Shown one piece after another: positions 5,221-28,684 of a stretch of 64,000 nt of DNA. The notes under the pieces were generated by a model. The model was not told the DNA's origin. It made no database searches and worked only from the letters and a program-made list of their open reading frames with translations. The position numbers were made by a program, and so were the translations under genes. Positions within the stretch are counted from its first letter, which is position 1; the number at the start of each line of letters is the position of its first letter. This stretch comes from Convolutriloba macropyga (lineage: Eukaryota): contig NC_134473.1 in the NCBI RefSeq assembly GCF_964194025.1, positions 55,304,001-55,368,000 of the forward strand, given 5' to 3'.

Positions 5221-8200
5221 CCATTCTCATGTTTTGATGAGTTAAATTTTGTCCTCATAACGGGATAAATAAGTATTGCCCGGCGGGCATTAAGTGGTTG
5301 CGCAGCCCTCTTGAGGCCTTTCAAACATTTATAACCTAAAAAAGTTGTTCTGGATGCTTTTCTTGTCTCAACTCATAGTACTCTACAGTTTGTTGCATTT
5401 GTTGAGACTGCAACCAATCCAAAAGATTCCAGCTGCCAAAAACTGAAGGGTGGTGTAACCCACAGACGTCAAATATCTGAAACCTAATCTACTACTTCAT
5501 CTTACTGGTCTCTAAGAATGCGATTCAACAAAACCTGGGCCTTTTCAGGCGGCAATTTCATGGTGTGAAGAGCGTTTCCTGATCTTAATATTTTGACCCC
5601 GCGCACCGCCTTTCATGGTATTTGTCAGTCCTATTACTTATTGTTACCTTGATGTTCATTCCTTATGCTAAAGAGAGTCAAAAATTGATATAAAACTTTA
5701 ATTACTCGGAAGTTTTTGCAATAAGTTGCATCGCCAGGAGTTAAAAACTTGTTAAGTTAATTATTTACAAATATGCGTACATACTGCATTACCAAATTTT
5801 TGCAAAAATTCCGTAGGTTTTCACCTTAAATTTTGTTAATATGTTAAAAGAACTTGAAAACTGTTAATATGTGTCCTTCTCTTTATAAGTCTTGAATGAG
5901 AGATTTTGGTTTTCGTGATCGGTTTAACGCTGCTCAGCGTTGTTTAGCCGGTTACACCAGCTGATGTGCAGTACCGGAGGTTGTTACAGTCAAGATAAGC
6001 AAAGTACATGCATTTGTAAGCTCTGCAACTATCCGATCTTCGGGAAGTTTCACCTGCAAGACCATGCAACCTGGAAATGAACGAGAAAAAGTGCTACGTC
6101 TCTATCATAACTCTTATCGATTCATGCACGTTTTATGTTATAAATATCTGTATACATGCGTTTATTAATGTTTCATCGCTTAATTTTAATTTAAGATATC
6201 TTCTTTTAATGTTGTGTATATAAAGACGTAATTCAATAAGTATATGTTTTTGTGGCACATTGCAATGAAATAATATCATTGATTCAATCAAACGCGCGCG
6301 ATATGCCAAAACATTCGCTTAAAAGCTCATCTATTGGTGAGTCCCTGTTTTGATGCTCTGCCATCCGCATGGTTATATGTTTTCATGTTTGCCGCCCATT
6401 GGCGGAATCGTATCCTCTACATGTTTTTTTTTGTATACCACATGCGATATTAGATTCTGTTCAAGAATGGACTTTAGTGATGATAAACAGTTTTCTAGTT
6501 TCCGTGTTTGTGTAGATCAGTGTAAGATGCGCTATCTTTTGCAACTTTTCTTTAAGTCTACTGCTTCCATGGCTCAAAATTTGTAAGAAAAGTGTGGGTT
6601 TGTCCTTCTGCTTTAGCTTATTGTTTGACTTGCATTCCACTATTGTTTTGGCTGTCTTTCTAATGTCGTCTATAAATTTTCCAATGCTCTGATTAACATT
6701 GCCTGAAGACCAATTTTCCGGACATCGAGTTTTTCATTCCATTGTCTGTTGGCATCCTGCACCATTTACAGGAGGCTTTTTTTGTTCATCAACGTCGACT
6801 GTCATTTTTGGGAAGGCTAGTTTATCTTTGTTATCCATTTTTTCCTGTGTGAATTCCAAAAAAGTATGCGAATTTCTTCTTATCTGAAATCAATTATTGG
6901 TGTTCTTTTTTTTGTGCAAATTTTCACTTTGACAGTTATAGTTACCATTGCTTTTAGCATAATCATTTGTGACTGCTAGTTTCAGTACTCGTTTAAATGA
7001 CAATTTTTCAATATTGGTTGGGGTATATTTGAAGTAAAAACATTGAAGAGCAACTTCGATAGCTTCCGAGACGGGGACATTGATAGTAAAACTTTCGTTA
7101 TCAAGTGATATAAAATGCTCATTTGCCTCAAGCTCCATATTCTCAAATTTTTGTCTAGGTGCAGGGCTTGAAATTTTGATGTGAACTCCGGTCATTTTTT
7201 CAAAATTGGAGTAAAAAAATGAACAAATTCTGGTTAAAACGGAGCACATTGGTGTGTTTTCTTTTGCATTTTTGCCAACCCGTACAGTCGCGCTGGTTTT
7301 GTTCCGGTTGTTTGTAGTTTTTGACATTTTTTCCAAAAAAAATAATTTGTTTTTGCAGTTCAAGTAAAATTCCGTTGATGTTAAATTTTTCTTTTTTGAT
7401 GAAATCTTCCTATTTGATGTTTTTGGGCGGTTGTGTTTTTCGATCGTTTTATATTGATATCTTTTTCTGTAAGACACCAAATCTTCTACACTTACCAAAA
7501 CCTACGGATAAAAACTATTCTCTTCATGATACTTAACCGCCCTTGGCCAACTTCTATCTGCTGGTGTCTCTCTTAAATTTTATGCGTACCAATTTGGGGA
7601 TACCTCTACCTCACACAAATTTTAACCAAAAACAACATTTTCTTGCATACTACTGACTAACTTGTTAATGTCTGCCAAAAAAGTGTATTCATTAAATTTG
7701 TTCTTTATTGTTTGTTTTGGTCTTTAACATAGAAGTTTTCTGAAGAATAATGGTAGCTCTATTTCGTCTAGGATTTTGACTGCGTCGTCGCTTTCTTTGA
7801 CGGTGCGACATTTTTTCAAGCTTTCGTTTCGTTTTTTTTTGTTTTCTATCAAAGAGCAATTTTTTTCAAGAAAAACAACAGGCTAAAACGTTTTCCTTAG
7901 CGAAGCTCCTTATTTCTGACCTATTATTCTCAGCTTTCTGACGCAGTTCAATCGCGCTATATTTAGTTTTCGTTAGCTGGACTTTGAGTAATCTACGTTG
8001 AAAGGATTTAACTGCCTGCTCAGAATCGACGTCATACGGAACACGAATAATCAGAAAGTCGGTAATGAAATCATTATCTCATTTTTCCTGAAACTATACT
8101 ATTTAGCTGCCATTCTCATGTTTTGATGAGTTAAATTTTGTCCTCATAACGGGATAAATAAGTATTGCCCGGCGGGCATTAAGTGGTTGCGCAGCCCTCT

Positions 8201-9515: not shown

Positions 9516-10625
9516 ATGGTTCTTTCCGAAATCACCAGCCATGTTGAGAACGAACCTCAAGATTCAGTAGATAGTGAAAATATTAAGAAAAGTGAGCTTC
9601 ACCCTGAGTCGACCATTAAAAGTAAATCGAAAAGTGAGAACGAAGATGAACCACTTCTTCATGAGAATCCTCAGAAATACGTGATGTTTCCAATTGAGTA
9701 CCCGGATATCTGGAGTATGTATAAAAAGGCAGTGGCCAGTTTTTGGACCGTTGAAGAGGTCGACCTTTCCAAGGACATGGACGATTGGGAAAAATTGAAG
9801 GCTGATGAGCAGCACTTCATCAAACATGTCTTGGCGTTCTTCGCCGCTAGTGACGGAATTGTAAATGAAAATTTGGTTGAGCGATTTGGCCAGGAGGTTC
9901 AAATTCCTGAAGCCAGGAGCTTCTACGGTTTTCAAATTGCTATTGAAAATATTCATTCTGAAATGTACTCACTATTAATAGATACATATATTCGGGATCC
10001 TACAGAGCGAGACTATTTATTCAATGCTCTTGAGAATATGCCAGCTGTTCGGAAGAAGGCGGATTGGGCTTTGAACTGGATTACCAGTGATAACGCAACC
10101 TATGGAGAACGGATAATTGCGTTTGCTTCAGTTGAAGGAATATTCTTCTCAGGATCATTTGCAGCTATCTTCTGGTTGAAGAAACGGGGAGTGATGCCTG
10201 GGTTGACCTTTTCAAATGAGCTCATTAGTCGTGACGAAGGCCTGCACACTGACTTTGCTTGTCTCATGTTTAAGCATCTGGTCAACAAACCTGCTGAAGA
10301 ACGCATTAAGCAGATAGTGACTGATGCTGTAAAAATAGAGCAAGAGTTTCTAACCGACGCCTTGCCTGTCGATTTGATCGGAATGAATAGCCGTCTGATG
10401 CGCGAGTATATTGAATTCGTTGCTGACCGTCTTCTCGTAGAGCTTGGCTGTGAAAAAATCTGGAATCGTGACAATCCATTTCCTTTTATGGACATGATTA
10501 ACATGGAAGGAAAGACAAATTTTTTTGAGAAAAGAGTAGGAGAGTACCAGAAAGCAGGTGTGATGAACTCGGTCGGCCAGTCGGCTAAGAAGCAATTTGT
10601 TTTCAGTGTCGATGAAGAGTTTTAA
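9516..10625 (+). CDS. RRM2: Ribonucleoside-diphosphate reductase small subunit (class Ia R2), intronless
   Basis: Motifs [30 protein letters not shown] (radical Tyr), [32 protein letters not shown]-terminal FSVDEEF; AATAAA at ~10710. Confidence 0.97.
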
Positions 10626-11399
10626 ACTTGTGATATAAGATGAGCTACGAAGCTTTTTCAGTAGCAATCAAATATTGTGATGTTTTATATTGTGTTTTGA
10701 CTTCCTTTGAATAAATTGATTTTAATGCGCTAAAATAATGAGCACGACTCGTTAATTTCCACATTGCTCATTGATCTGATTGTAACGTGTTAGTTTGTGT
10801 GTTACTTACCATTTTAATTTAATATTTTAACGATGTAATGTTCTAGATTAATTTTGGCAAATGGCAACGTCAGAATTGATGGTAAAATATCAAGTGCTTA
10901 TGAAATGCAGTGCCTAGGGCAATAGATCGAAAGTGAAAAAAATGGGACTATGCATCGAAAAAAATTATTGAAGTTGCACATTGTTCCACTCAGATTTTTG
11001 CATTCACTTATCGTGAAACATGTTGATCGTGATAACACCGGTGTTAGTAATAACAGCCGTGATGATGTTGGGTTCTGGCCCATGGCAAGCTAAGGCATGG
11101 CTCGCAAGACATGGCTAGAAGTGGAAAAGTTTTTTGGTCTGAATATTATGCGCTAAAGCCTGTTGAATATTTAGCTCGTGCCTGAACCAATAATAATAAC
11201 GTCAAGATCTTTTGAGCTAGGAATTTGGAGATCTGATGAATACCGTCCGTGCCAGCATTGTTTCCATAAGTCCCTGATATTGAAAAGACCATTCGATATT
11301 TACTTGACCTGCACATATCATTACTTCATCATCAAATGCGTTTCAACCATCTTCAAGAGCTCGCCCTGCCAAACAATTTTCTCCTCTCCTGTCATAATT

Positions 11400-12500
11400 A
11401 GGAGCAGAGCTAATATCTTGAAGCACATGAAAAGCTTGAAGAAATCAGAAAATCTCCCGAAAAAAATGACACAGGGATCAATTATCGCCCACATAGCTTC
11501 GAGAAAGCAGAATTACTCAACAATTGCTTCCATTCCATGTTTTTCCCAAGACTGCTTTCAGCGTAAACGAAATCAACTGCGAGAATCCGACTCTCACAAA
11601 CTTTGACATTTTCAAAACGCATCTCAGAAGCATCTTACAAGAACTCGACGTGACTAAGACACTAATGGTGGAACGGTCAACGCATCGCATACTATCATGA
11701 AGAGCATAAAAAGTATAAAAAAATCCACTGATTTGGAAAACTGCCGCCGTCCACCATCTACAAGAAAGGTGAGGTGCCAGGTTGAAAACTTCAGACCACT
11801 GTCGTTACTGAACATTGACAGCAAAGTCTTAGAAAAGTTACTCTATGAACCACTCTTCATGCACTTCGAACACTTCCTAACCGCGCTTCAATATGATTTT
11901 GTGAAAAGGAAATCAGTTAGCTCTAGCATGCTTTTCTTGAAATCAGTATACACCACGTTGTACCAAGATTCCAAAAGTGAAGCTGTAACATTTTTTTATT
12001 TTTTTTTCAATTCGTTTGACAAGGTGGCACACTTCGAGCTCTTAAGGAAGGTCACGAACATGGGAGTTGGTGGCTGTTCCGTGCGACTATCGCTGCCACA
12101 AGAAAAATTTCCTTAGAACTGATAACACCTGGTCGATTATGAACTGTTACAAGCGGTGTACTTCTTGGGTTCCTACAGGAGGGAAGTTCTAATTGATTTA
12201 AGAGGAACCGAGCAGTCGGCCTTCTTCACTCAACAATCGAGCAGTGACGTTTTTCACTCAACATTGACGTGGAGCGAAGACAACGATGTGATTCCATTAC
12301 TAGCGTTGGATCAAGAGCGAGTCCAGAAGAAAAGATCTTTCAACTCCCGAAGTTAGAACAGAAAAAGTGAGAATAGAATTTGGCTTCAGGCTGGACAGGA
12401 TCGTGTACCGTATTCATCCAATCATTCACTTTCTCAACCCAGTGGGACTCGAGAGTCGCTGAATTACTCAGACCAGGAGTTTTGTCGACGAGAAGTTCTC
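11400..12500 (+). mobile_element. Decayed non-LTR retrotransposon (LINE) reverse transcriptase fragment
   Basis: ORF 11697-12116 has ENFRPLSLLNIDSKVLEKL, QYDFVKRKS and FDKVAHFELLRKV (RT domains 1-3); disrupted; boundaries approximate. Confidence 0.8.
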
Positions 12501-13764
12501 AGAATCGAATGCCTGCAATTGCAATGTGACAGCAGAAACAACTGGGTGACGTTATAATTGACTGCAAGGGAAATCCCCCCAGCATATTGCTGTGAATTCC
12601 CATCTACAACATCCACATTACGGTCGAATTGTTTCATTGTTGGTTGGCAACGAGCTTTACAAGGGGAGTTCCCATGAACTCTGGTTCGCCATAAAGTATC
12701 AAGTTTAAAGCTTTTGTTCCACTTGCCACCAAGACGGTATGCGTAGTGGGAATACCAAAATGACGTGCAAAGAAAAACGCACCAGCACTACTAACGAGCA
12801 CATCCAACAAAATGCTGTGAAATCAAACTGGTAATACAGAGGTATAGGCCGCAAAATCTAAAACTGGAACAAACAAGCTCGAGATCAACGCTCGGCCTGG
12901 CAAGTTAGCACCCAGTGATTTTGGCTCATTCCGCAATTTTAAAATACTAATTTCCGTAACCCACTATGTGCTGCTGCTGCTTCTATCCATAATTGTAGAT
13001 CTCAAGGTAAAACGTTGTTCTTGCTTCGTTTTGTCAGTGGTGGCAGCCTTTTTTCGCAGACATTTTCTGCTCGTTTTCATACTTTTTTCTAGCTGTTTGT
13101 TAGATTTTTACTAGCTATCAAATTTTTACTAGCTATCAGACGGAGCCAGCATTTGTTCCACAGGCAACCCATAATCCCCGTTCTCCAAACTCTAAGCTTC
13201 ATACGCTCAATCTACTTCTGAGTAATCACCGAAAAACCGTAACAAAGAATTGTTAACCCCAAAAAGTCCACCTGAGATACACAATGCTGATTTTCCTTTA
13301 ATGAACAAGTAAATACGTGTTTCTTTTGTAATTAAGTTATGTACTTAACTCTACAATGCACCTATAAAATTTTTGAGTTCGATATAATTGATGTTGAGGT
13401 CCTTAATCAAACTAGACAAAGATCTGCTGCACGTCTGCAATAAATATACGAACAAAGAATACTCAGATAAATATACGGACAAAGTGATTAGCTAAACGAT
13501 AACAAAGAGCAAATGGAAAATATCACTGACAGCATCCAAAGTTGATCTTAACGAGCTGAAGAATTCAAAACTTTTGCCCAGTCCATGGGAATTGTAGAGA
13601 AGACAACGAGTAAAACTTGGTCTCAAAACACTAGAGCACGTGATGGTCTCGGCACAGTGCTTTCCTCATAATTTGAGGACTTGCGTGTGCTTGTAAAGAT
13701 GGCAGTTATGGAAGTATTAATTTTGCTGAAATGTATATACAAAAAGCAAAACAAATTCACCGTA

Positions 13765-14940
13765 AGTAGTATAACGTGAGCAAAGCTGGGGGGGGGGGGG
13801 GGGGGTAAAAAGACGTACCTATGTATAAAGATTACGTATAGTCCATATTCCCTCAAATCCCAAAGACGTACCTCACAGCATGATACCCAAGCTGTTCACA
13901 CGAGGGGATTAGCAAGATAATCCCTTGATATTAAATTAGTAAGGTCATTTACCCTTTCCCATTTTACACTTTAATAATGTAAATTTCCAAAAGTGTACCT
14001 CACAGCATGACACCCAAGCTGTTCACACGAGGGGATTAGCAAGATAATCCCTTGATATTAAATTAGTAAGGTCATTTACCCCCTACCATTTTACACTTTA
14101 ATAATGTAAATTTCCAAAAGTGTACCTCACAGCATGACACCCAAGCTGTTCACACGAGGGGATTAGCAAGATAATCCCTTGATATTAAATTAGTAAGGTC
14201 ATTTACCCTTTCCCATATTACACTTTAATAATGTAAATTTCCAAAAGTGTACCTCACAGCATGACACCCAAGCTGCTCACACGAGGGGATTAGCAAGATA
14301 ATCCCTTAATATTAAATTAGGTCATTTACCCTTTCCCATATTACACTTTAAAAATGTAAATTTCCAAAAGTGTACCTCACAGCATGACACCCAAGGTGTT
14401 CACACGAGGGGGATTAGCAAGATAATGCCTTAACAACAAATCAGTCAAGTCATTGACCCCTACCATATTACACTTTACTAATGTCAATTTCCAAAGACGT
14501 ACCTCACAGCTTGAGACCCAAGCTGTTCACACGAAAGGGATTAGCAGGATAATGTTTTAATATTAAATTAGGAAGGATGACTCATTTACAGTTACGTACG
14601 TTAGACGTGATTTTCAAAAATGAATCTCACAGCATGATACCCAAGCTGTTCACACGAAGGGGATTAGCAAGATAATCCTTCAATAATAATTTAGGATGAC
14701 TCATTTACAGTTACGTACGACTTTTCAAAAATGTACCTCACAGCATGACACCCAAGCTGTTCACACAAAGGGGATTAGCAAGATAATCCTTCAATAATAA
14801 TTTAGGATGACTCATTTAAAGTTACGTACGACTTTTCAAAAATGTACCTCACAGTATGATACCCAAGCTGTTCACACTAACGGGGTTAGCAAGATAGTGT
14901 CTTAACAACAAACTAATAAGGACATTTACCCACCCATTCC
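13765..14940 (+). repeat. Left terminal inverted repeat: terminus, G-run and 9 tandem ~110-127 bp units
   Basis: Units start at ~13868, 13995, 14122, 14249, 14372, 14499, 14622, 14733 and 14844, each with core GTACCTCACAGCATGAYACCCAAGCTGTTCACACGAGGGGATTAGCAAGATAAT. Confidence 0.93.
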
Positions 14941-15155
14941 CATATTAACAAAAAAGTACAATTTTTTATTTTTGGTTTTTACAGATTTTTTTTACAATTT
15001 TAATCAATTTTTTGTTTAAAATAGTGTTTCACTGTGTCGTTTTAAACTGAAAATCCAATTTTCCGATTTCAGAAAAAGTTGTATTATTGTTTTGAAAATG
15101 TCTATTTCTCATTTTTTTTTAACCAATCACATAATCTGTCAGATCTGATTTTGGA

Positions 15156-15803
15156 ATGTTGATGCTGAAAAACATTTACGATTCATTTTGTCTTTTTTCT
15201 TGGTTGAACATAAGTAGCCTAAAAAAAATGCAAAATACTCCAATTCTTCCTTTACTTCCTTCAACATCTTTTCTTTCTACTTTTCATTCAGATTTAGATT
15301 ACGCTCCTATCACGGAAGCATCAATATTTAAAACGGTAGTAACCGATAACAATTTGGAATTATCTTTTGAGGTGGATTGCACTAGAGTAACAATTAAAAC
15401 TCAGACAACTAGCTTGACACTTCCGAAGGATTTGTGGAGAACTTTAGGGGCAGCTAGACATCATAACCTCCACCTAGCCGAAGAAAAAGTCAACAATTCA
15501 TTGCTTTCTCTCCAAACTTATTTTCAAACCATTGAAAGAATTCGAAAAGAACAAGGGTTTCACCCGTTGAAAGACAGCAAAGGAATTATGTTCCCGTACT
15601 CTCGTGACATAAATCACTACGGTGTTTGGTGGGTAGAAGACATGTTCTCCAAGCATGCTGACTCATTTTCTAAAAACCAGAAGCCTTCAATCTGCCCGAT
15701 TTCAAAGACCTTATTCTTCCTCCGATCCAGGAAACTGACAATGAAGAGACTCAATCATCTCATCAAAATATTCCTTTCTCGAACTATAAGTGTTCTCCAA
15801 TAG
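15156..15803 (+). CDS. Polinton accessory protein, unknown function (start may be at 15228, MQNT...)
   Basis: 215-aa ORF inside the element, co-oriented with the gene block; no recognisable motif. Confidence 0.5.
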   Translation: MLMLKNIYDSFCLFSWLNISSLKKMQNTPILPLLPSTSFLSTFHSDLDYAPITEASIFKTVVTDNNLELSFEVDCTRVTIKTQTTSLTLPKDLWRTLGAARHHNLHLAEEKVNNSLLSLQTYFQTIERIRKEQGFHPLKDSKGIMFPYSRDINHYGVWWVEDMFSKHADSFSKNQKPSICPISKTLFFLRSRKLTMKRLNHLIKIFLSRTISVLQ

Positions 15804-15839
15804 AATAGTGAGATAACTCGCTTTTGTTCGATGCTAAAT

Positions 15840-16035
15840 TCACCCTCACGTGACTAAATATAGAAAACTCATCTTTGGCATCACGTGATGTTACTAAAAA
15901 TAGAAGTGACATAACTATTACGTCATGATGCACGCTCTATTTTCATTGGTTACGAATTATTTTATAACATCTCATTGGATACGAAGTTTATTTTTCGCTA
16001 CTGTTCTCGTTCTTACTTAAATTTCATTGGTTCAA
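15840..16035 (+). promoter_or_regulatory. Putative Pol II promoter of the Polinton + strand gene block
   Basis: Intergenic cluster of two TCACGTGA E-boxes, TTACGTCA (CRE-like) and three reverse CCAAT boxes (CATTGG at ~15945, 15973, 16025); a pyrimidine tract and TTTCACAG sit directly before the ATG at 16163. Confidence 0.45.
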
Positions 16036-16162
16036 GATATCAACCCCTTTCTTGAAGACAATTTATTCATTTGTTTCTTTGCGGTTTCAATATTCAGTTA
16101 CCCTTGTAGACCCAAATTTTCTGCTTTAAAAACTTTACATACTTCACATTCTCATTTCACAG

Positions 16163-16873
16163 ATGGATCAAAGCTCTGTCTCTCCTAACTCCAAAAAACC
16201 ATTCTCCTTTCCCCTCCGTAAACGAGATTACAAAGGAAAACCAGTTGTTCCCTCATCACAATTGGAATACCACAATGAGAGCATGTTTTCTCTATTTAAA
16301 GACAACAACGATAAAAAAGACAACACCGACTCAAAACCAAATGAGGAGCACGATGGAAGAAACAACTGTTGGTCCTTTCAAGAATACGGGAACCGGAAGT
16401 TTCAAATCAGCATCCCAGAGGAAACCGTCAACTCAAACTCTAACTGGACTCACTTGAAAGTATTTTGCGAAAATGTGGAAAGTGAATATGTTCTGCATCA
16501 ATTTCTGATGCTATCGGCCAGAGAATTGAAGCTTGTTATTGAAAAGATACCTGAGATGATAAAAGAAGCACTACTGTTCGAACCTACTGTAGGTACTGCG
16601 AAGCTGGTGATTGACGAAACTGTGTTCCAACCAACTGATGTTGAGGAAAAAGCAAAATTTGATGTGTTCTGGGAGGTGAGTGAGACTGCTCGACGGAAGG
16701 TGTGTGTAACTAGAATATTTTTCCAAGATGACCCGAATCGATGTTACTTCACAATCAAGCTGTTCACACGAGGGAGTGAAAAGGACATTTTCAGAAGGAA
16801 ATGCTTTCTTTCGGTCAGAATTGGTGAGATGGAGAAACTACACAGAATGAGTGATAAATTATTTCAGTGCTGA
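16163..16873 (+). CDS. Polinton protein with two tandem PC4-like (putative ssDNA-binding) domains
   Basis: Internal duplication W.......RK..I/V......W/Y...LK.F......Y/F......L...E...L resembles the PC4 fold; PC4-like genes are common in Polintons; assigned by eye. Confidence 0.55.
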   Translation: MDQSSVSPNSKKPFSFPLRKRDYKGKPVVPSSQLEYHNESMFSLFKDNNDKKDNTDSKPNEEHDGRNNCWSFQEYGNRKFQISIPEETVNSNSNWTHLKVFCENVESEYVLHQFLMLSARELKLVIEKIPEMIKEALLFEPTVGTAKLVIDETVFQPTDVEEKAKFDVFWEVSETARRKVCVTRIFFQDDPNRCYFTIKLFTRGSEKDIFRRKCFLSVRIGEMEKLHRMSDKLFQC

Positions 16874-16903
16874 ACAAAGTCAAAAATCAAAAAAGATCGC
16901 AAA

Positions 16904-17398
16904 GTGCATAACAGTAATTGTAAATTTTTAATATTGTATGTTGTGATGTTTGTATTTAATCACTTTTTAAAATTTAATGTTCCAGTACAGTTGCTTGATA
17001 TGAACATTGAGGAAATTGTAGCGTTAGAGAAAGAAATCAGTAAACTTTTTGTTGGAAATACAAAACGCAAAAATTATTTTTTGGCTGTCTGTCGAAGCTT
17101 GAACAAAAATGTAGATCTGGATAAAATCAACAGAGAAACTCCGTTTGGGGGACTAATAGGAGTTGGTGACTCAAAGTTAGAAAAACTTCTCAATTGGTCA
17201 AAAATTTTTCGATTACATGCTACATTTCATGATGCCGCAGGCTACCTGAAAACAAATCTAAATATTGGCCCTGGATATTGTTACGTTGTTCCATTTTTTA
17301 ATTCTATATTGAATTTTTGTTTCTTGGGACATATAACAGGTCTTGCATATTGTTGTTTTTTGAAAATGTCATCACGATTCCAATTAATCAAAGTGTGA
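16904..17398 (+). CDS. Polinton hypothetical protein (true start probably 16946 or 17000)
   Basis: ORF in the tightly packed gene block; no motif recognised. Confidence 0.5.
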   Translation: MHNSNCKFLILYVVMFVFNHFLKFNVPVQLLDMNIEEIVALEKEISKLFVGNTKRKNYFLAVCRSLNKNVDLDKINRETPFGGLIGVGDSKLEKLLNWSKIFRLHATFHDAAGYLKTNLNIGPGYCYVVPFFNSILNFCFLGHITGLAYCCFLKMSSRFQLIKV

Positions 17399-17440
17399 AT
17401 CATTATTTCCTAAAGACGAACAAAAATCAGTTGCTCTCTA

Positions 17441-17695
17441 ATGACAGATCATCTCAATCACGCATCTGACTTTATTTTTGATAATAACAATCAGGAAAGA
17501 CCTCCTTGGAAAATCTGTGGTCGCACTTGCTCTCGAACAGCTTTTTTGTCAATATTTCAGTGCTTAGTTGTATTAGTACTGCTTCTGTTTTCAATTATTA
17601 ATCTTATTTTTGCTAGAACTTGTGACGAACGAACAGTTTGGATTGCTATTCTTTCAAGTGCCGTTGGTTATATACTTCCTAATCCCCGAACATAA
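17441..17695 (+). CDS. Small two-helix membrane protein upstream of the ATPase
   Basis: WKICG...hydrophobic helix...INL...WIAILSSAVGYILPNP; two predicted TM segments; abuts the ATPase start. Confidence 0.75.
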   Translation: MTDHLNHASDFIFDNNNQERPPWKICGRTCSRTAFLSIFQCLVVLVLLLFSIINLIFARTCDERTVWIAILSSAVGYILPNPRT

Positions 17696-17696
17696 A

Positions 17697-18437
17697 ATGA
17701 ACAAAATCATTTCAACAAACGAACGAATTTTGATGTATCTTGTTGGTCCTTCCGGATCTGGAAAAACTGTTTTTATCAGTGATATGCTACGAATGAAAAC
17801 TTTTCTGCCATCATTTGATCGAATTTTATACTTTTATAAGCACTTTCAGCCAATTTACGACACAATGATGCAATCAATTGCAGACATAGAATTCATTCAG
17901 GGAGTTGACTTTGATTTAATCGATAACTTACCCGCTGACGGCACTAAATATTTACTTATATTCGATGATTCATTGGACATTCTTTCCAAGTCGGAAAAGT
18001 TCAACGGAATTGCGACAGCCGGTAGACATCGAAACCTAAATTGTGTATATATCAAGCATAATCTCTTCCACAAAAACAAAACTGGACGTGATGCCGAGCT
18101 GCAGACTACTCACATTGTTTTGTTCAAATCACCGAGAGATGTGCAGCAGATTGATATCTTGGGGAGACAGCTAGGCCTCGGAAGACAACTAAAACAGTGG
18201 TATGATGATGCAACACAAGAACCATATGGTCATCTTATGATTGATTTGAGACCATCTACACCTGATTTGTTGAGATACTGTTCAAATGTAACATCATTTC
18301 CCTCAGAATTCTTCGTACCGAACAGTCGTGCTCGTATTACTGATATTAATGATAAACGCACAGAACTATTATACTCTGAAGCTCTTTCGGAATCTCAGCA
18401 AGAATTTTCAACCAGCTTTCCTTCTAAATTGTCCTAA
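17697..18437 (+). CDS. A32/FtsK-like DNA packaging ATPase
   Basis: Walker A GPSGSGKT, Walker B LLIFDD, GRHRN motif, HIVLFKSPRD, PYGHLMIDL; ATG at 17697. Confidence 0.93.
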   Translation: MNKIISTNERILMYLVGPSGSGKTVFISDMLRMKTFLPSFDRILYFYKHFQPIYDTMMQSIADIEFIQGVDFDLIDNLPADGTKYLLIFDDSLDILSKSEKFNGIATAGRHRNLNCVYIKHNLFHKNKTGRDAELQTTHIVLFKSPRDVQQIDILGRQLGLGRQLKQWYDDATQEPYGHLMIDLRPSTPDLLRYCSNVTSFPSEFFVPNSRARITDINDKRTELLYSEALSESQQEFSTSFPSKLS

Positions 18438-18669
18438 AGAGTTCATCAGATTTCTCTGTGAGTGTATTGTAAACTTGATTGAAGGAAACCTCACAGGAGT
18501 AAGAAAAAATCAGTTTGTTCGCTTCCAAAAACAACTTAGAAAGCTCACGTCAAAATCAACAACCCTCAATTCCAGAAGACTTATATTGGGCTCGAAAGCT
18601 GGAATAACAATATTAGGTTACATATATCAACCTTGTATGAACAAATTTTCAACTTTCTTCAATGAGTGA
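18349..18669 (+). CDS. Small Polinton protein (LCECxxNxxxGN type)
   Basis: FIRFLCECIVNLIEGNL motif, which I recall from small Polinton ORFs; overlaps the ATPase 3' end. Confidence 0.7.
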   Translation: MINAQNYYTLKLFRNLSKNFQPAFLLNCPKEFIRFLCECIVNLIEGNLTGVRKNQFVRFQKQLRKLTSKSTTLNSRRLILGSKAGITILGYIYQPCMNKFSTFFNE

Positions 18670-19132
18670 GGTCAAAAAGTTTGTTCTTGTTCCAAAAGAA
18701 CTGTGGGAGTCCAGAAAAGGGAAATTACCGGAACCCTCCTGCGAGATCTATAAAAAGGAAGAAACTGTTTTTCCAGTTATCAAAAAAGCGAAAGAAGAAA
18801 TTAGTTCCGAAAAAACCGATCGTCCACCTAAAGAACTTAAGACAGATCTGGAATTTCACTATAAGAACAGTCCCGAGACATTGAAAACTTTGAAGGAAAT
18901 TTACGAAAACAAACGGTTGAAAGTTTCACTTTCCAATACAATTATTGTTGACAACGTTGACACTGGAGTTGATATAAAAACATTCCTTCATTCAATCAAA
19001 TTGAAAAACGCTCCAGTTGATCCAAACTATTTCCTAATTCTTAAAGTTCTAAATCTGAGACCATATCTGGTTAAAAACAACATTTTGAGGACACAGTATG
19101 GTTCAGACTGGTTCAATTACAGTTTCAGATAG
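18662..19132 (+). CDS. Polinton hypothetical protein preceding integrase
   Basis: 156-aa ORF overlapping both neighbours; begins with KKFVLVP. Confidence 0.7.
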   Translation: MSEVKKFVLVPKELWESRKGKLPEPSCEIYKKEETVFPVIKKAKEEISSEKTDRPPKELKTDLEFHYKNSPETLKTLKEIYENKRLKVSLSNTIIVDNVDTGVDIKTFLHSIKLKNAPVDPNYFLILKVLNLRPYLVKNNILRTQYGSDWFNYSFR

Positions 19133-20042
19133 AATCAAATTGCAGAAGTTGTATAAAGGGAAGGGACCACCAGCTTTCGGTTCTATCAACAACCTAACAA
19201 AATCAAGTGGAATAAGTCGCGAGAAAGTTACAGAATTTTTACAATCAAAAGACTCTTATACGAAGTACAAAGGGATCAGAAGAAAATTTCCCCGGCTAAA
19301 TGCGCATGCTCGCTATATTGATGAGATTTGGTGCTTGGATCTTGCACAAATGGATAAACTATCACAATGGAACCGAGGTATCAACTTTTTACTCGTTACT
19401 GTCGATGTTTTTTCTCGATTCTTGCGAGTAGAAGCATTACGAAGCAAAAGAGCAGAGGGTGTGAAAGCAGCTTTTATCAAAATGTGTTCGAAAAAGAACG
19501 AACTCAATTTCCCGAAAAAATTATGGCTAGATCAAGGAAAAGAGTTCTTTGGAGATATGGCCAATTTCTGCGAGGATGTGGGAGTCAAATATTATCACAC
19601 TTATAGTGAAACAAAAGTAGCTTTTGGCGAGAGAGCTATACGAACCCTGAAAAACTTAATTTACCGCTACCTGGAGGAAAAGGACACATTATCTTACATC
19701 AAAGACCTGCAAATGTTTGTTGACATCATCAACTCTAGAATAAATCGAAGTATTGGTTTGGCTCCCAAAAATGTAGTAAATGCTGACTTTTTGACTGTCA
19801 TGTACAAGCGGATGAAACTACGAAAAAACAAGAAGCCTAATTTTAAAGTAGGTGATAAAGTTCGGTTGGTATTAGTAGGGCACAATTTTCGAAAAGGATA
19901 TAAGCCTCACTATACACATGAAATTTTCCTAATTCGAAAAATAAACACTTTGGCTCCTTTCCTGACTTACTTTGTTGTTGATCAGAAAGGAGAAAACATT
20001 GATGGAATCTTTTACGAGCAAGAATTGTCAAAAGTTAAATAA
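19098..20042 (+). CDS. Retroviral-like (rve) Polinton integrase, no C-terminal chromodomain
   Basis: D (WCLDLAQM), D (LWLDQGKEF), E (GERAIRTLK); VDVFSRF; C-terminal FKVGDKVR...GIFYEQEL then stop. Confidence 0.95.
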   Translation: MVQTGSITVSDRIKLQKLYKGKGPPAFGSINNLTKSSGISREKVTEFLQSKDSYTKYKGIRRKFPRLNAHARYIDEIWCLDLAQMDKLSQWNRGINFLLVTVDVFSRFLRVEALRSKRAEGVKAAFIKMCSKKNELNFPKKLWLDQGKEFFGDMANFCEDVGVKYYHTYSETKVAFGERAIRTLKNLIYRYLEEKDTLSYIKDLQMFVDIINSRINRSIGLAPKNVVNADFLTVMYKRMKLRKNKKPNFKVGDKVRLVLVGHNFRKGYKPHYTHEIFLIRKINTLAPFLTYFVVDQKGENIDGIFYEQELSKVK

Positions 20043-20069
20043 TCATTTTTGAATTAGTCGCGCTAGAAA

Positions 20070-20408
20070 ATGGACGGTTACAATCTGCCTTATTTTAAAG
20101 GAGTTCCTCGTCAGAGAGGGCGTGGCTTTGGAGCCTTGGCAAGAACAGTCGCTAGAACAACTCTCCCAATTCTCAAGAAATACGTTTTACCTGCAGCAAA
20201 AAAAATTGGACGAGATGTAATCGAGTCAGCCATTCCCGAAATTGGAGGTGTTTTATCAGGACAAACTTCAATTAAAAAAGCAGTAAAGAAGACTGCGAAA
20301 TCAACAATACGAAAACAAGTTGGTGGTGGTATGAAAAAGAGGAAAAACACGAGACAAAGTATCGTTCGGCAAAAAATTCGGAAAGACTTTCTGAAGAACC
20401 TTGACTAA
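20070..20408 (+). CDS. Basic core / DNA-condensing protein (adenovirus pVII/pX-like)
   Basis: Lys/Arg-rich, with Gly motifs QRGRGFG and QVGGG resembling adenain cleavage sites; lies upstream of the capsid genes. Confidence 0.7.
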   Translation: MDGYNLPYFKGVPRQRGRGFGALARTVARTTLPILKKYVLPAAKKIGRDVIESAIPEIGGVLSGQTSIKKAVKKTAKSTIRKQVGGGMKKRKNTRQSIVRQKIRKDFLKNLD

Positions 20409-20449
20409 TCATTTTCCCAAACAAACGTCACAGAGTACAGTCAAACATC

Positions 20450-21247
20450 ATGAATTCGTTTTATCTTGAATTAGTGTCCAACGCTTCCTCTCAAGTTTAT
20501 CCTCAAAATACAATGGCTTCATTCACTAATTTTCTTCCCGACAAAATTGAACTGGATGGATCTTGGGAAGTAGCTTTAGTCGAAGTATCATATCCCGGTA
20601 TATGTTATAACGTTGAAGGAGGATTGATGACCTTTCACTATGATGAGAAATTTAAGCATGTCTTTGCCATTCCACCAGCAGTTTTTAACTCTATGGATGA
20701 ATTTGTAAAGAGTCTTACAGATATTCCCAAAAAAGCACGACATCCCAAAAACTTAGATCCTCAATTTTCCATCAACATCGACAAAAAAAGTCGAAGACTA
20801 ACTTTTTGCAATAGAGAATCTCAAAATGTATCATTCAGCAAAAGTTTGGCTGCTAACTTGGGCGTTGAAGCTGACAAACCTGTTATGCCTTATTCGAAAA
20901 GATCATACAACACCAAGTCCTGGGCAACGGCAGATCTCCCTTTTGATATTACTGGAACACATACAGTTTTACTCTACTTGGATATAGTTGAACCCAATTC
21001 AGTCGGTGATGTGAAATGTCCTCTTCTACGCTCCTTTCCATTCAAACACCGAGAGTTCCATAATGATGAGATTAAGAGATCGCAAGTTCTGAGTTATCGC
21101 AGTTTCGAACACTTGAGATTCCATAAAGTAATCAAATCGAACTTCCACAGTATCCATGTAGAATTAAGAAACGCTGCTGGACACCTTGTTCCCTTCTTCC
21201 CTATTGGTCAAGTTCAACTTACTTTATTATTCCAGAAAAAATCTTGA
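20450..21247 (+). CDS. Minor capsid protein (penton, single jelly-roll)
   Basis: N-terminal FYLELVSNAS...YPQNTMASF...L...WEVALVEVSYP and C-terminal YLDIVEP..VGD....LLR...I.VELRN..G..VPF, typical of Polinton mCP. Confidence 0.88.
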   Translation: MNSFYLELVSNASSQVYPQNTMASFTNFLPDKIELDGSWEVALVEVSYPGICYNVEGGLMTFHYDEKFKHVFAIPPAVFNSMDEFVKSLTDIPKKARHPKNLDPQFSINIDKKSRRLTFCNRESQNVSFSKSLAANLGVEADKPVMPYSKRSYNTKSWATADLPFDITGTHTVLLYLDIVEPNSVGDVKCPLLRSFPFKHREFHNDEIKRSQVLSYRSFEHLRFHKVIKSNFHSIHVELRNAAGHLVPFFPIGQVQLTLLFQKKS

Positions 21248-21287
21248 TCATTTCCTCAATTATCATTATAAAAAACGGTCGGCTAAA

Positions 21288-22526
21288 ATGAATTCCTTAT
21301 CTCACTCTATGCTCGACTTTTTTGGGAAAGTTCCAATTTTAGACCCAATTCTTTGGTCCAACGAGCAACAAATATTTCCAACAAATTCCTTAAACGAGTC
21401 AACAATCGAATTTCAATTGGAAACTGATCGTAATATTTTCACTGACTTGCGATCTACTCGATTATTCATCAGAGGAAGGGTTATTAAAGGCGATCGAACA
21501 CGTTTGGATAATGCCGAAGAAACATTATTGGTAAACAATGCTCTTCATTCACTTTTTTCTAATTGCGAAGTCTATCTAAACAATGAACAAGTTCACAGTG
21601 CCAATTCTCTTTATGCTCATCAAGCTTTTGTTTCTGCTGAGTTTTCAGGTACAAAAGGAACGAAGGAAAGCTTGTCTCAATGTCAAGGATATCGATACGA
21701 GATTGAGCCAAACGATTTTAATAAAAGACCGTTTACAGATGTTGTTTTTCAAAAAGATAAAGATGAGTTTACTTTTTACGGTCCGTTGGCAATAGGTCTA
21801 TTTGCTTGTGAAACTTTACTTCTCCCAAATGTCAACCTCAGACTGAAGTTGATCCGGTCTTCTCCAGCGTTCTATATGATCGATACTGGTGGGCTGAACT
21901 CTGAGGCCTTAATTTTGGAAGCTTGCCTTTTTACTAGACAGGTAGCAATCTCAGATAACTGGATGAGAAGTTTCAAAAGCAGACTGCTTCGAGAACCTGC
22001 CATATTTTACTATAATGAAGAACTTCCAAAGACGTTTATTATTCCCGCAGGACAGAACCAGTTTATACAAGAAAATATATTTTCAAACAAACCAATTCGA
22101 ATGATTGATATTGCTATGAATCTAAATAATGAGTTCAGTGGAACATACAACACGAATCCGTTCCATTTTCGTAAATTTGGTCTTCGGCAAGTTAAAATTG
22201 TGCGTGGGAATCAAACTATAGTCAACTTGAAAACAGAAAATCACGTGAGAGCTTATGCTGAAACAATGAAAGCACTCAAGTTTGATGATGACGGTCCTAA
22301 CATTCAATACAAGGATTTTGAAAACCATTTTCATTTATTTTTCGATCTTACTTCAACACAGGAGGCCAATGTCGAAATGCATTTTCCTGATGTAGTTGGA
22401 GCAGGAATTCGTTTAGAGCTCTACTTTGCTAACAATTTGACCAATACTGTAGAATTATTTGTTAGTGGTGAACGTATAAGTTCAATTGCAATTGATAAGG
22501 AGGGATCAGTCACCAAAAATGGATAA
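21288..22526 (+). CDS. Major capsid protein (double jelly-roll)
   Basis: LDFF..., TIEF, DL..TRL, VNNALHSLFSNCEVYLN, LLPNVNLRLKLIR, NPFHF, FFDLTS, IRLELYFA; ATG at 21288. Confidence 0.92.
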   Translation: MNSLSHSMLDFFGKVPILDPILWSNEQQIFPTNSLNESTIEFQLETDRNIFTDLRSTRLFIRGRVIKGDRTRLDNAEETLLVNNALHSLFSNCEVYLNNEQVHSANSLYAHQAFVSAEFSGTKGTKESLSQCQGYRYEIEPNDFNKRPFTDVVFQKDKDEFTFYGPLAIGLFACETLLLPNVNLRLKLIRSSPAFYMIDTGGLNSEALILEACLFTRQVAISDNWMRSFKSRLLREPAIFYYNEELPKTFIIPAGQNQFIQENIFSNKPIRMIDIAMNLNNEFSGTYNTNPFHFRKFGLRQVKIVRGNQTIVNLKTENHVRAYAETMKALKFDDDGPNIQYKDFENHFHLFFDLTSTQEANVEMHFPDVVGAGIRLELYFANNLTNTVELFVSGERISSIAIDKEGSVTKNG

Positions 22527-22914
22527 TCAACAACTCTTACATGTTGTCAACAGGTTCCCACACCTAAAGTTCAAATACCTCGGTTCCTTCCCTGCAGATC
22601 TTCGACCAAAAAATTTACCTACAAACACGTTTTGTATAATCAACATAGATCCATCTACTCAACCGGGCTCCCACTGGATTTTGCTTGCGAATAAGAACGG
22701 AAAGTTGTTCTACGGTGATTCGATGGGAGAAATGTTGCAAAATTATGGCATCAGGACAAAAGCAAACTTTGGTTCATTAGTACAGGAGAAACTCCAAGAT
22801 TCAGAATTGTGTGGTTTATATGCTATTTATTTTGCCCATGTGTTATTTTCCAAAGTCTCATCTAAATATTTAAATGATTTTCATATATTGAAGTTCTTTG
22901 CTGATGTTTTGTAA
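22519..22914 (+). CDS. Adenain/Ulp1-like cysteine maturation protease
   Basis: GSFPAD, INIDPSTQPGSHW (His), YGDSMG (Asp), LQ....CGLY (Gln/Cys); ATG at 22519 overlaps the MCP stop. Confidence 0.92.
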   Translation: MDNQQLLHVVNRFPHLKFKYLGSFPADLRPKNLPTNTFCIINIDPSTQPGSHWILLANKNGKLFYGDSMGEMLQNYGIRTKANFGSLVQEKLQDSELCGLYAIYFAHVLFSKVSSKYLNDFHILKFFADVL

Positions 22915-23140
22915 GTTTTGAAAACCAAAATCTTTAAATGTTTAAACAATAATTTGAAAAATGATGCAAATGGTTTTCAAAACTTTAAAAGTTTGTAAAG
23001 TTTGTATTTAATTGATTGTATGTGTATTTGTTTCTAATTCATTTATTTAAAAAAAACGGCTTTTGTTAAAAAGAGATATTGGTAGGTAAACTGTGAATTA
23101 AAAACAGAGGCGATATAAATATAAGACTAAAGAAAACGAG

Positions 23141-25201
23141 TTATAAATCTAAAGGAGTAGTGTGAATACCATCTTCACAGACTTTACGCTTGGGATAAAA
23201 ATATGACAGTCCCACTTTCTTTAGTTCATAGGTACAAACTTTCTTGTTGTCAACAACTCTGAAGCCACGATTTGTTGAATAAACTCGCTCCTCATCGAAC
23301 AGAACTTTTCTGTACTTGTTTAGGGGCTCCTCAATGTTTTTCTTGTTGAGTCCTTTACTTGATAGTTTAACTGTGTCTGTTTCCTCGTAACAGCAATACG
23401 TCTTTGAACACAGAGCAATCATCTCAGAGCATCTAAATTCTTCCTTAAAAAGTCCAGGAGTTCTCTTGTCAAAGGCAGCATGTTTTTTGCAACATTCTCG
23501 TGGGAAGAAATTGCTGCTGGAGTTTGCTGCAAAGTTATCATTGCAGTCGCTCTGTCTCATCCAGTACCACACTGATCGCATTTCCGGTCGAATTATTTCA
23601 TCAATTTTTTTCTCACTAAGGGCCATGTAGAGACTGTCGGTATCCATTTCAATGAGTTCGTACTTGTTCTTATCACAGAAAGGGGAGAAGAAGTTGTATT
23701 TAAGTTGTAACATGGTGAGTTTGGCGTACTGGAGGATGAAGAATCCTACAATTATTGGTTCCTTATGCTCGATGCGTGTCTTGCTCATTTCTACCTCATA
23801 TATCTGCTCTGGTAGCTCATTCATAGTCTTGAAAAATCTATTGTTAATAAATTTGTCCACCTGTGAGCCTTTCACGTACTTGGTGTTCGTATGTCGACTA
23901 CGGTCCATGATCTGATATCCATACGAACTGTTCCCAATCAGCTTCATTGTCTCCGCAACGACTGTTGACTCCTTATTCTGGTCTCCTTCGCGGCGGGCAT
24001 CGACAACATTCCGAACAAATGTCTCAAAGCAGCGCCGGGGAGTGTATTGGAGAAACCAAAAGACGTCTTTTAGGATCACACCTTTTTCTAGATAAAATAA
24101 CAAAAGTGGTGTAATAACTGGTCCTCGTTCAAGCTTGAAACTGGAAATGAGCATTTTTCTGGGTCTGGGTAGTAATTTGTTGCGTTCTGCAAACTCTTTC
24201 ATATGGTCCCCAATATCATCTCGTCCAACTTCACAATTCTTGAAAATTGGAGGAAAGTCTTCAAAGTACGGATACATTTCCTCTGGAACCTCAAGACTAC
24301 AATCGACGACACCAAACAGTTCTCCACGTTTAATTTTCTCAATGAGCGAGTTTTTGTTCATCGATGGTTGGAAGGGATAATTTGACTTGAGAAAGTCTTT
24401 AACACCTTTTGTGTTGTCTGTCCGACATTTCTTCCATTGACACTCCCAGATCTCTTCAACATTCAACCCCAATCCCTTCAGGTACTCTCTTCTATCATTG
24501 TCACGTTCTCTTCGCTTCAATCCGCTTTCTATGTCCTCGAAGAGAAGCGGTTTTTCCTCTTGACACGGACAAAAATGAAAGAAACATCCCATCGCTTCAA
24601 AAACCGTGTTGCAATGGTTACAAAACCCATCAACTAAATAAGGACCGAGCTTCTTTTGTTTCTTGTGTGTGAACTGGGTTTGTATTTTACAATTGGGGTG
24701 AACCTGTTGGAAGTAGTCCATGACCTGCTGTTCAAAGTAGCTTCTCCAGTTCCTGTTCGGATGAAATTTTTCGGTCTCTTCATTGTACTCCCACTTTGTA
24801 TAGGGTCCTGTTGGCATCTCTTTTGTCATGGAAAAAGGGTACAACTGACTGGCATCTATTCCGACGATGGACTTGCAAACGTTTTCTGACTCTCGAATTT
24901 TTGTTTCACCAACTTTTGCATACCTTGTAAAGATAATTGAGGGTCCCCCTGTTAGCCACTTTCGAATGTAATTATCATATTCTTTATCCTTCTCACAAAA
25001 CGGAAAAAAAGCTGCATCTGTTGACGAATGAAGGAACCTGTTTGCCAAGTTGGGAAGAGTGTAGCCCAACTTCAACATGTCTACTTGTCTTGAGTGGTAA
25101 AAACTGATCATTTTCTTCATAGCCTCAAGTGTAGGTTCGACATCTTTGTTATTGTACCACATGAGGAAGTCACGAAACGTCTGCATACCTTTTTTTCCCA
25201 T
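23141..25201 (-). CDS. Protein-primed DNA polymerase B, C-terminal part (ExoIII, palm/fingers/thumb, inserted VSR-like nuclease)
   Basis: YNNKDV, GGPSIIF, GIDASQLYPFSM, KLIGNSSYG, MDTDSLY, TPGLFKEE; insert YLVDGF...FEAMGCFFHFCPC...IWECQW. Continues the upstream ORF via a -1 shift at ~25190-25196. Confidence 0.95.
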   Translation of the reverse strand: MGKKGMQTFRDFLMWYNNKDVEPTLEAMKKMISFYHSRQVDMLKLGYTLPNLANRFLHSSTDAAFFPFCEKDKEYDNYIRKWLTGGPSIIFTRYAKVGETKIRESENVCKSIVGIDASQLYPFSMTKEMPTGPYTKWEYNEETEKFHPNRNWRSYFEQQVMDYFQQVHPNCKIQTQFTHKKQKKLGPYLVDGFCNHCNTVFEAMGCFFHFCPCQEEKPLLFEDIESGLKRRERDNDRREYLKGLGLNVEEIWECQWKKCRTDNTKGVKDFLKSNYPFQPSMNKNSLIEKIKRGELFGVVDCSLEVPEEMYPYFEDFPPIFKNCEVGRDDIGDHMKEFAERNKLLPRPRKMLISSFKLERGPVITPLLLFYLEKGVILKDVFWFLQYTPRRCFETFVRNVVDARREGDQNKESTVVAETMKLIGNSSYGYQIMDRSRHTNTKYVKGSQVDKFINNRFFKTMNELPEQIYEVEMSKTRIEHKEPIIVGFFILQYAKLTMLQLKYNFFSPFCDKNKYELIEMDTDSLYMALSEKKIDEIIRPEMRSVWYWMRQSDCNDNFAANSSSNFFPRECCKKHAAFDKRTPGLFKEEFRCSEMIALCSKTYCCYEETDTVKLSSKGLNKKNIEEPLNKYRKVLFDEERVYSTNRGFRVVDNKKVCTYELKKVGLSYFYPKRKVCEDGIHTTPLDL

Positions 25202-27465: not shown

Positions 27466-27647
27466 TTTCGCTGAAAATAAAAAATGAAATGTTAGATTGG
27501 AAGTGAGAAAGGAGTAAAAAAAATTGTTAAAATGAAAGTTGCGGTGGAATAAAAATTTGTCAGAAGTTGGAATGATTATTGTACTCCACAGCACTCAATT
27601 CTGTAAATCAGAAAAACAAAACGGAAATGAAAAGTCCTTTATCAAAT

Positions 27648-27895
27648 ATGACGTAATTGCGACGACAAAATGACGTAACTATAACGACATAATGATGAAA
27701 TTGTGACGACGAAAGGACGTAATTATAAAGACATAAAGACGTAATTGTGACGACATAATGACGTAATTGTGACGACATAATGGCGTAATTGTGACGACAA
27801 AATGACGTAATTATGACGATAGAATTACGTAATTTTGACGACAAAATGACGTCATTTTGACGACACTATGACGTAATTGTGACGTGTTATGATGT
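27648..27895. repeat. About 11 x 22-bp tandem repeat ATGACGTAATTGTGACGACAWA (CRE/ATF-like sites) upstream of pPolB
   Basis: Directly visible periodic repeat containing TGACGT(A/C)A and TGACG half-sites. Confidence 0.9.
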
Positions 27896-28029
27896 TATTG
27901 TGATGTTATGATTAATTTTGACTATAAAATAGTGACTAATTGCCTAATCATGTGAGAATTTTATGATTTTCAATGGTTTTTTTTATTTCAATAATTGGGT
28001 ATATATTCCTTCCTCAAAAACATGTTTTA

Positions 28030-28650
28030 ATAAAAGTAAACTTACCAGTTTCTTTTTTGGATTTTAAGCTGAAGTGAAGTGTTGTATTATCTACTATAGG
28101 GGGAAGTTCTGGCTGGCTAAAATGGTCCAGTTTAATTACAGGAGCAAAGGAAAATTTCTATTAATTAAATTTATTTGCTTACCCGCTTCAACACTGCAAG
28201 TGATCAACTTGAAACTGGCAACAAGGAGAAAGAAACAAAGACTATCTGAAAAAAAAGATAAATTAAACTATAATTTTGATCAACTGATTTTTAGAAGTTG
28301 TTTGAAATAATGAATGGGAGTAGTGGCTTGGGAATAGGAGTAGTGTCCTAATAAAAGCAAACTTACCAGTTTTATTTTGGACTTGGAAGCGATGTGATGT
28401 GATGCAATATATACTATTTGGGGATATTTTGGCTGGCTAAAATGGTCCAGTTTAAATACAGGAACAAAGGAAAATTTCTATTAGTTGAAATTGTTTGCTT
28501 ACCTGCTTCAACACTGCAAGTGTTCAACTTGAAACTCTTCTTGCTGCAAGGAGAAAGAAACAAAGACTATCTGAAAAAAATGATAAATTAAACGAGAATT
28601 TTGACCAACTGATTTTTAGAAGTTGATTGAAATAATGAATAGGAGTAGAG
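28030..28650. repeat. Diverged ~320 bp direct duplication inside the Polinton, with minus-strand splice signals
   Basis: ~28030-28330 versus ~28351-28648; ACTTACC, GCTTACC, CTAAAATG and CTGAAAAAA are kept in both copies. Confidence 0.85.
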
Positions 28651-28684
28651 ACTAATATATGAGCCAGCCAATCTAATTTGTTTT

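Follow-up and report, generated by a model that had tools for sequence, protein, structure and literature searches.

A 19-nucleotide identity between a PC4-like gene and the terminal arrays of a Polinton may be a passive relic of a copied gene patch

The window analyzed here, a stretch of 64,000 nucleotides, contains a Polinton/Maverick element of 15,833 bp (13765 to 29597). The element is delimited by a 6-bp target-site duplication, with the same hexamer ACCGTA on both flanks (13759 to 13764 on the left and 29598 to 29603 on the right), and by inverted termini that start with AGTAGTA and a poly-G run. This start leads into a unique stretch of about 100 bp, beyond which lie the subterminal tandem arrays. 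The non-repeated part of the left terminus (13765 to 13867, plus strand) aligns with its counterpart at the right end (29510 to 29597, minus strand) and with relatives of the element, and about 80 bp of it are kept even in a distant subfamily. The left array (13868 to 14960, plus strand) comprises nine units of 111-127 bp, each with a conserved block of about 55 bp that holds the core sequence considered below, and the right array (28693 to 29509, minus strand) comprises seven units in inverted orientation. Arrays included, about 0.9-1.2 kb of the two ends can be aligned in inverted orientation, forming long terminal inverted repeats.

On the plus strand, a PC4/PUR/Whirly-like gene (16163 to 16873; "MOSUB"-like in the terms used for adintoviruses), predicted to encode a single-strand nucleic-acid-binding protein, is followed by genes for an A32/FtsK-like packaging ATPase (17610 to 18437; Pfam Pox_A32, E = 1.3e-8) and an rve-family integrase (19098 to 20042; Pfam rve, E = 6e-9, above the curated cut-off). 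The minus strand carries the gene for a protein-primed type-B DNA polymerase with N-terminal C2H2 zinc fingers (23141 to 27594). The polymerase pieces of the window's copy gave no direct match in Pfam, PDB, or PHROGs, and the polymerase was assigned through relatives 53-81% identical to the C-terminal piece, which carry PF03175. The polymerase gene in this copy is split over two reading frames, with at least one break, and the PC4-like gene shows one frame change relative to intact relatives. Protein-primed polymerases do not usually have C2H2 fingers; in a longer relative, P0234, fingers and polymerase-like sequence are contained within one protein. Directly upstream of the polymerase gene lies an internal tandem array of 11 copies of a 22-bp unit with CRE-like TGACGTAA motifs (27643 to 27884, plus strand). 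The exact octamer occurs in five of the approximately 11 copies, versus about 1.6 occurrences expected in the whole window, and the array may serve as a promoter or enhancer. Candidate open reading frames for a jelly-roll capsid protein and an adenain-like protease had no profile match, and no Rfam RNA family was found in the 64-kb window. The preliminary description had taken the element for a Polinton, and this assignment is borne out by the 6-bp duplications, the long inverted repeats, the rve integrase, the protein-primed type-B polymerase, and the A32/FtsK-like ATPase. It is an ordinary Polinton/adintovirus-like member with rapidly evolving subterminal arrays.

The flanking host DNA shows several features of its own. 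An intronless gene for the small chain of ribonucleotide reductase (9516 to 10625, plus strand; Pfam E = 3e-117) lies 3 kb from the element, and its product is 72-77% identical to RRM2 of invertebrate animals. In keeping with this, the host is probably an invertebrate. Two open reading frames of identical length (202 amino acids; 4003 to 4611 and 6890 to 7498, minus strand) are found 2.9 kb apart and have no Pfam match, suggesting a tandem duplication in the host flank. On the other side of the element, positions 54380 to 54510 form a C-rich, low-complexity stretch of CCTA/CCCC-type repeats, with a GC skew of -0.33 in the 2-kb bin.

The label "PC4-like" had been given to the gene at 16163 to 16873 in the preliminary description, and it holds at the level of fold and not at that of sequence-profile membership. 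Searches of Pfam, PDB sequences, and PHROGs with the protein returned no sequence-level match, neither single sequences nor 23 family members belonged to the Pfam profiles PC4, PurA, or Whirly even at E <= 10, and a profile of the family against PDB sequences found nothing significant. A profile search of 1.8 billion representatives did recover 51 relatives, some of them only 20-35% identical. AlphaFold2 run on close relatives only gave a useless model (pLDDT 34), and the deeper alignment (A3) was required for a model with a pLDDT of 70 and a pTM of 0.67. In this model the N-terminal 65 or so residues are predicted to be disordered, and residues 67-247, mostly at a pLDDT of 80-95, form two tandem beta-beta-beta-beta-alpha repeats. 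The top Foldseek match in the PDB was to repeats I-II of Pur-alpha (probability 1.00, E = 1e-4, target TM about 0.6), with MRP1/2, Whirly proteins, and PC4 homologues ranking below it; the search of viral models returned, among others, "MOSUB" of the lancelet and insect adintoviruses and a protein of Drosophila-associated adintovirus 2. Sequence identity to the structural matches is 7-15%. The topology of the PC4-like domain family has been reviewed as a beta-beta-beta-beta-alpha unit that is paired, either in one chain or in a dimer (PMC7549692), and the label is supported at the fold level because the modelled topology and the Foldseek matches agree with this family. The Polinton protein thus shares two tandem beta-beta-beta-beta-alpha repeats with the superfamily of PC4/Sub1, Pur-alpha, Whirly, trypanosome MRP1/2, and adintovirus MOSUB, and differs from it in the absence of a Pfam or PDB sequence match and in an N-terminal segment predicted to be disordered. 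The PC4 orthologue of Magnaporthe oryzae is named MoSub1 (PMC4350104), and we infer that the adintovirus name "MOSUB" is connected to it. Judging from the model, the protein probably binds single-stranded DNA.

The motif K-L-F-T-R lies on a confidently modelled beta strand and ranks with the best-preserved motifs across the family, the most distant members included. The preservation of K-L-F-T-R-G at 20-35% identity indicates that this stretch of the gene is old and is held by protein constraint. One distant member, P0046 (33% identity), is found in identical form on three short contigs (L020, L021, and L022) from three separate metagenomes, one of them TARA, and the PC4-like family therefore extends beyond the host.

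It is this motif that the gene has in common with the terminal arrays. The 19-mer CAAGCTGTTCACACGAGGG (16756 to 16774, plus strand) covers the third base of an Ile codon and the codons K-L-F-T-R-G, and maps to the third strand of the second repeat in the modelled protein. Outside the gene, exact copies are found at 13888, 14015, and 14142 in the left array (plus strand) and at 29461 in the right array (minus strand). The preliminary description had reported an exact 19-bp identity with several terminal units and close variants in the rest, and both statements are confirmed: 4 of the 16 units are exact and the other 12 differ at one to four positions (one mismatch in three units, two in four, three in three, and four in two). 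The readings it gave across the core, IKLFTRGS in the gene and MIPKLFTRGD followed by a stop in the array unit, are both correct. It had also noted a further match upstream, which is present as an 8/9 match between TACTTCACA (16745 to 16753, plus strand) and the start of the array unit, TACCTCACA, across an 8-nt gap; this similarity is equalled by about 6% of random interior segments (p of about 0.06) and is not significant alone. Downstream of the 19-mer no similarity between gene and unit was found, and with nothing there and only the 8/9 match upstream a longer copied patch was rejected.

The identity is not uniform along its length. Conservation in 90% or more of the units from four elements extends over the initial 14 nt of the 19-mer and no further, the five bases at its 3' end belong to the variable part of the array unit, and the exact 19-nt identity is limited to one amplified unit subtype, found in the window and in one relative (L005). 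In this subtype a 7-bp inverted repeat, GGGATTA ... TAATCCC, lies just 3' of the core (13906 to 13926 in the window, with equivalents in the other 127-bp units); it is broken in the remaining subtypes. Two other roles for the shared sequence were considered and discarded. The unit is not a peptide gene for MIPKLFTRGD, as single-base insertions and deletions right after the core mean that no frame is kept between units, and the 19-mer is not a recombination junction, as it is an inner array unit, and not the 19-mer, that meets the ATPase gene in the tandem triplication of L005.

Relatives of the element were compared through 14 DNA copies of the PC4-like gene, and all of these relatives come from one long-read ENA assembly, ERZ25071359, with approximately 50-70x coverage. 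The close copies (L004, three copies in L005, L006, and L009) have genes 95-97% identical to that of the window, the same array family, and an exact gene 19-mer; L009 is uninformative for the arrays, being truncated within one. Intermediate copies (two in L007, and L008) are about 90% identical, have the same array family, and show zero or one change in the 19-mer. Distant copies (L001, L002, and two in L003) are about 80% identical in the gene, with one or two changes in the 19-mer, and have arrays of another type. Some copies are rearranged internally: a 3.36-kb segment running from the inner array units to the middle of the ATPase gene is present three times in tandem in L005 (5995 to 17096), about 4 kb are duplicated internally in L004, at about 17118, and in L009 a run of (ATGT)n extends for 6.2 kb after the PC4-like gene (9916 to 16136).

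The distant elements keep the terminal 100 bp or so (AGTAGTA, the poly-G run, and GTACCTATGTAT), and their arrays (2146 to 3030 in L001, 7830 to 9020 in L002, and 7430 to 9040 in L003) consist of unrelated AT-rich units of 153-155 bp in which the core is absent. Since the window's array type is absent from these sisters, the window-type arrays are lineage-specific and later than the gene sequence. Homology between the window's array type and the 154-bp type could not be demonstrated. Derivation of the unit from the unique subterminal segment of the distant subfamily was also rejected, as local and global alignments did not exceed shuffled sequences and a MAFFT alignment of the two was suggestive merely because it was forced; the origin of the remaining unit sequence could thus not be traced by alignments to the distant subfamily. 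A unit-like match at 54363 proved to be the product of a loose pattern and is no true unit.

Within the window-type arrays, the number of units varies from 4 to 17 between copies, and the conserved block of about 55 bp is at least 90% kept across 44 units from four elements. The gene 19-mer covers only positions 21-39 of this block, its last five matched bases are the least conserved of the block, and the conserved flanks of the block have no match in the gene. We infer that the arrays probably act as a protein-binding platform or as enhancers for the inward-pointing genes, independently of the gene copy. Subterminal tandem repeats in inverted ends are familiar from the terminal repeat arrays of poxviruses and from the transposase-binding repeats of En/Spm-type elements. 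The Polinton ends resemble these in having arrays of units of about 110-130 bp just inside a unique terminal stretch, in the variation of unit number, and in their fast turnover between sublineages. They differ in that the Polinton array has a short identity to an internal coding segment, which to our knowledge is not a described property of the poxvirus or En/Spm-type arrays, and the function of the array here is putative.

The preliminary description had proposed comparing related Polintons for co-variation of the repeat core with the coding segment and for synonymous-site constraint, and the comparison revealed neither. In four of the six array-bearing loci (L004, L006, L007, and L008), none of the units is identical to the gene of that locus, the best units showing one or two mismatches. 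Exact units amount to 4/16 in the window and 4/17 in L005, all of the one amplified subtype. The arrays of L007 and L008 show no counterpart of the changes in their genes, and the drift of the arrays is absent from the gene. Variable third codon positions number 3 of 7 inside the 19-mer versus 117 of 223 elsewhere across the 14 gene copies, 1 of 7 versus 64 of 223 across the ten array-bearing copies, and 0 of 7 versus 33 of 223 across the seven close copies; these counts come from a single assembly, and their power is modest overall and low within the close subfamily. Some 14-15% of all 19-nt windows in the PC4-like gene are at least as invariant as the 19-mer, so constraint at this site does not exceed the gene average. 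Judged by comparison with the sister copies, selection to keep the match appears unsupported.

How far the match exceeds chance was assessed in two ways. When the element interior was randomized 300 times with an order-2 Markov model, exact matches to the arrays reached a maximum of 11-16 nt. Analytically, the probability per element of a match is 4.7e-4 for 19 nt, 1.8e-3 for 18 nt, 6.7e-3 for 17 nt, 2.5e-2 for 16 nt, and 0.29 for 14 nt, where the value of about 5e-4 for the 19-mer takes in all unit variants. The preliminary description had called a chance match of this length very unlikely. The figure for the 19-mer agrees with that statement, but coincidence is less remote than that description supposed, the conserved portion of the match being only 14-16 nt long. 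When IMG/VR was scanned with a 16-mer for other sources of the core, 10 single matches resulted, equal to the chance expectation, and neither the 30-nt unit pattern nor the protein family was found in JGI metagenomes or IMG/VR.

We tentatively favor the explanation that the 19-nt identity is a passive relic of a patch of the gene that was copied into the founding repeat unit, with no working circuit. The K-L-F-T-R-G coding segment would have been in place, under protein constraint, before the arrays existed. A new subterminal repeat unit would then have arisen in one sub-lineage of this Polinton family, and the founding unit would have taken up about 19 bp (at most about 34 bp) from the PC4-like gene, 2-3 kb away on the same molecule, perhaps when repair or replication involved short-range template switching or the synthesis of filler DNA. 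Amplification of the unit into both inverted terminal arrays would have followed, after which arrays and gene would have drifted independently. This account is favored because the 19-nt match exceeds chance for one element, because the gene sequence came first and the arrays are later and lineage-specific, and because the block of about 55 bp far exceeds the shared part, with the 3' end of the 19-mer falling in its most variable positions. It is preferred to a circuit because neither maintenance of the match nor extra nucleotide-level constraint is seen. Transfer in the opposite direction, by conversion of the gene from the array, is ruled out: each base of the 19-mer in the window's gene is shared by one or more copies of the distant subfamily, whose arrays are of the other type, and the gene state is therefore ancestral. 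Of the three options raised by the preliminary description, amplification of the arrays from a fragment of the gene is thus the sole one that fits the comparative data, with an ancient gene and lineage-specific arrays. Filler DNA and templated patches at repair junctions are known products of short-range template switching. The Polinton match is like them in being a patch of 19 to about 34 bp with a source a few kb away, on the same molecule and in the same orientation, but it has no demonstrable junction, microhomology, or donor-recipient pair, and the event, if real, predates the amplification of the arrays.

The close rival to a relic is pure coincidence, in which a lineage-specific unit happens to share 14-16 bases with a run of codons and unit variation extended the run to 19 in the one amplified subtype; we regard this as a real possibility and hold it with less conviction. 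The first 14 nt, which alone are kept across units, are a length at which a match is expected by chance, and even a 16-mer has a probability of 0.025 per element. The exact 19-mers are confined to the subtype amplified in the window and L005, the outermost units of L004 and L008 deviate at the third base of the 19-mer, and the flanks are not significantly similar. The match was also picked from a scan of many windows, which brings a 1-in-2000 event within reach. Chance becomes plausible if the ancestral match was of 16-17 nt (P = 0.007-0.025), and this, like the weak flanking similarity, counts against the relic. Coincidence is in turn opposed by the 19-mer probability, which already includes all unit variants, by the upstream 8/9 match, which is weak but points in the same direction, and by the shared strand and orientation and the proximity on one molecule, which fit local copying.

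A functional identity, in which one factor or array-derived small RNAs would read both the arrays and the gene copy so that unit number tunes expression of the PC4-like gene, is unlikely in any form. The comparative data do not support a live self-referential circuit of the kind envisaged in the preliminary description, since the sisters L001-L003 keep the gene segment without window-type arrays and most array-bearing copies have no identical unit. If the shared sequence were a protein-binding site, one factor would occupy the array core and the gene copy and bring about titration, looping, or autoregulation; the candidates would be the PC4-like protein, the zinc-finger part of the polymerase, the integrase, or a host factor, and together they make up a reading that we consider improbable. 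The core does lie inside a highly conserved block, as expected of a functional site, the element encodes predicted nucleic-acid binders (the PC4/PUR-like fold and the C2H2 fingers), and the gene 19-mer is intact in 7/7 close copies. These seven copies, however, are only 3-4% diverged, so that about one variable third position would be expected by chance, and it is the variable 3' part of the block, rather than its conserved flanks, that has a match in the gene. With co-variation absent, third positions free to vary, and the gene segment retained by sisters of another array type, a shared binding site is left without support from the comparative tests, whose power is modest. The closest known logic to such a circuit is that of iteron-controlled plasmid replicons, in which the rep gene is autoregulated through a further copy of the origin repeats; that copy lies in the promoter of the binder's gene and co-evolves with the iterons. 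The Polinton is similar in that a motif repeated in a key cis region has one further copy at a gene of the same element, but this copy sits far inside the coding region, with no co-variation with the array and no extra constraint, and the binder is hypothetical.

Least credible of all is a small-RNA guide, in which transcripts of the inverted arrays would yield small RNAs against the PC4-like mRNA, for host piRNA/siRNA silencing or for self-limitation of the element: the right array has the reverse complement of the core on the plus strand, making antisense RNA conceivable, the host is apparently an animal, and small-RNA pathways use perfect identities in a range that includes 19 nt, but host silencing would target the whole element and need no special 19-mer, and the comparative tests, at modest power, lend the idea no support, as co-variation is absent and 4/6 array-bearing loci have no unit that perfectly matches their own gene.

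In conclusion, the comparison provides a clean case in which sister Polinton lineages differ through fast replacement of their subterminal arrays, the terminal 100 bp or so remaining fixed. It also assigns a widespread, unannotated Polinton gene family, at the level of fold, as PC4/PUR-like ("MOSUB"-like), with an invariant K-L-F-T-R strand motif. The 19-nt identity is also a worked example of why a striking short match within a repeat-rich element has to be put through comparative controls before being interpreted as a circuit. Should the functional alternative nevertheless be true, the arrays and the gene copy would form a circuit that senses copy number, a type not described from Polintons or adintoviruses; if live, it would have no described precedent as a regulatory circuit within a Polinton and would offer a handle on the control of replication genes in these elements.
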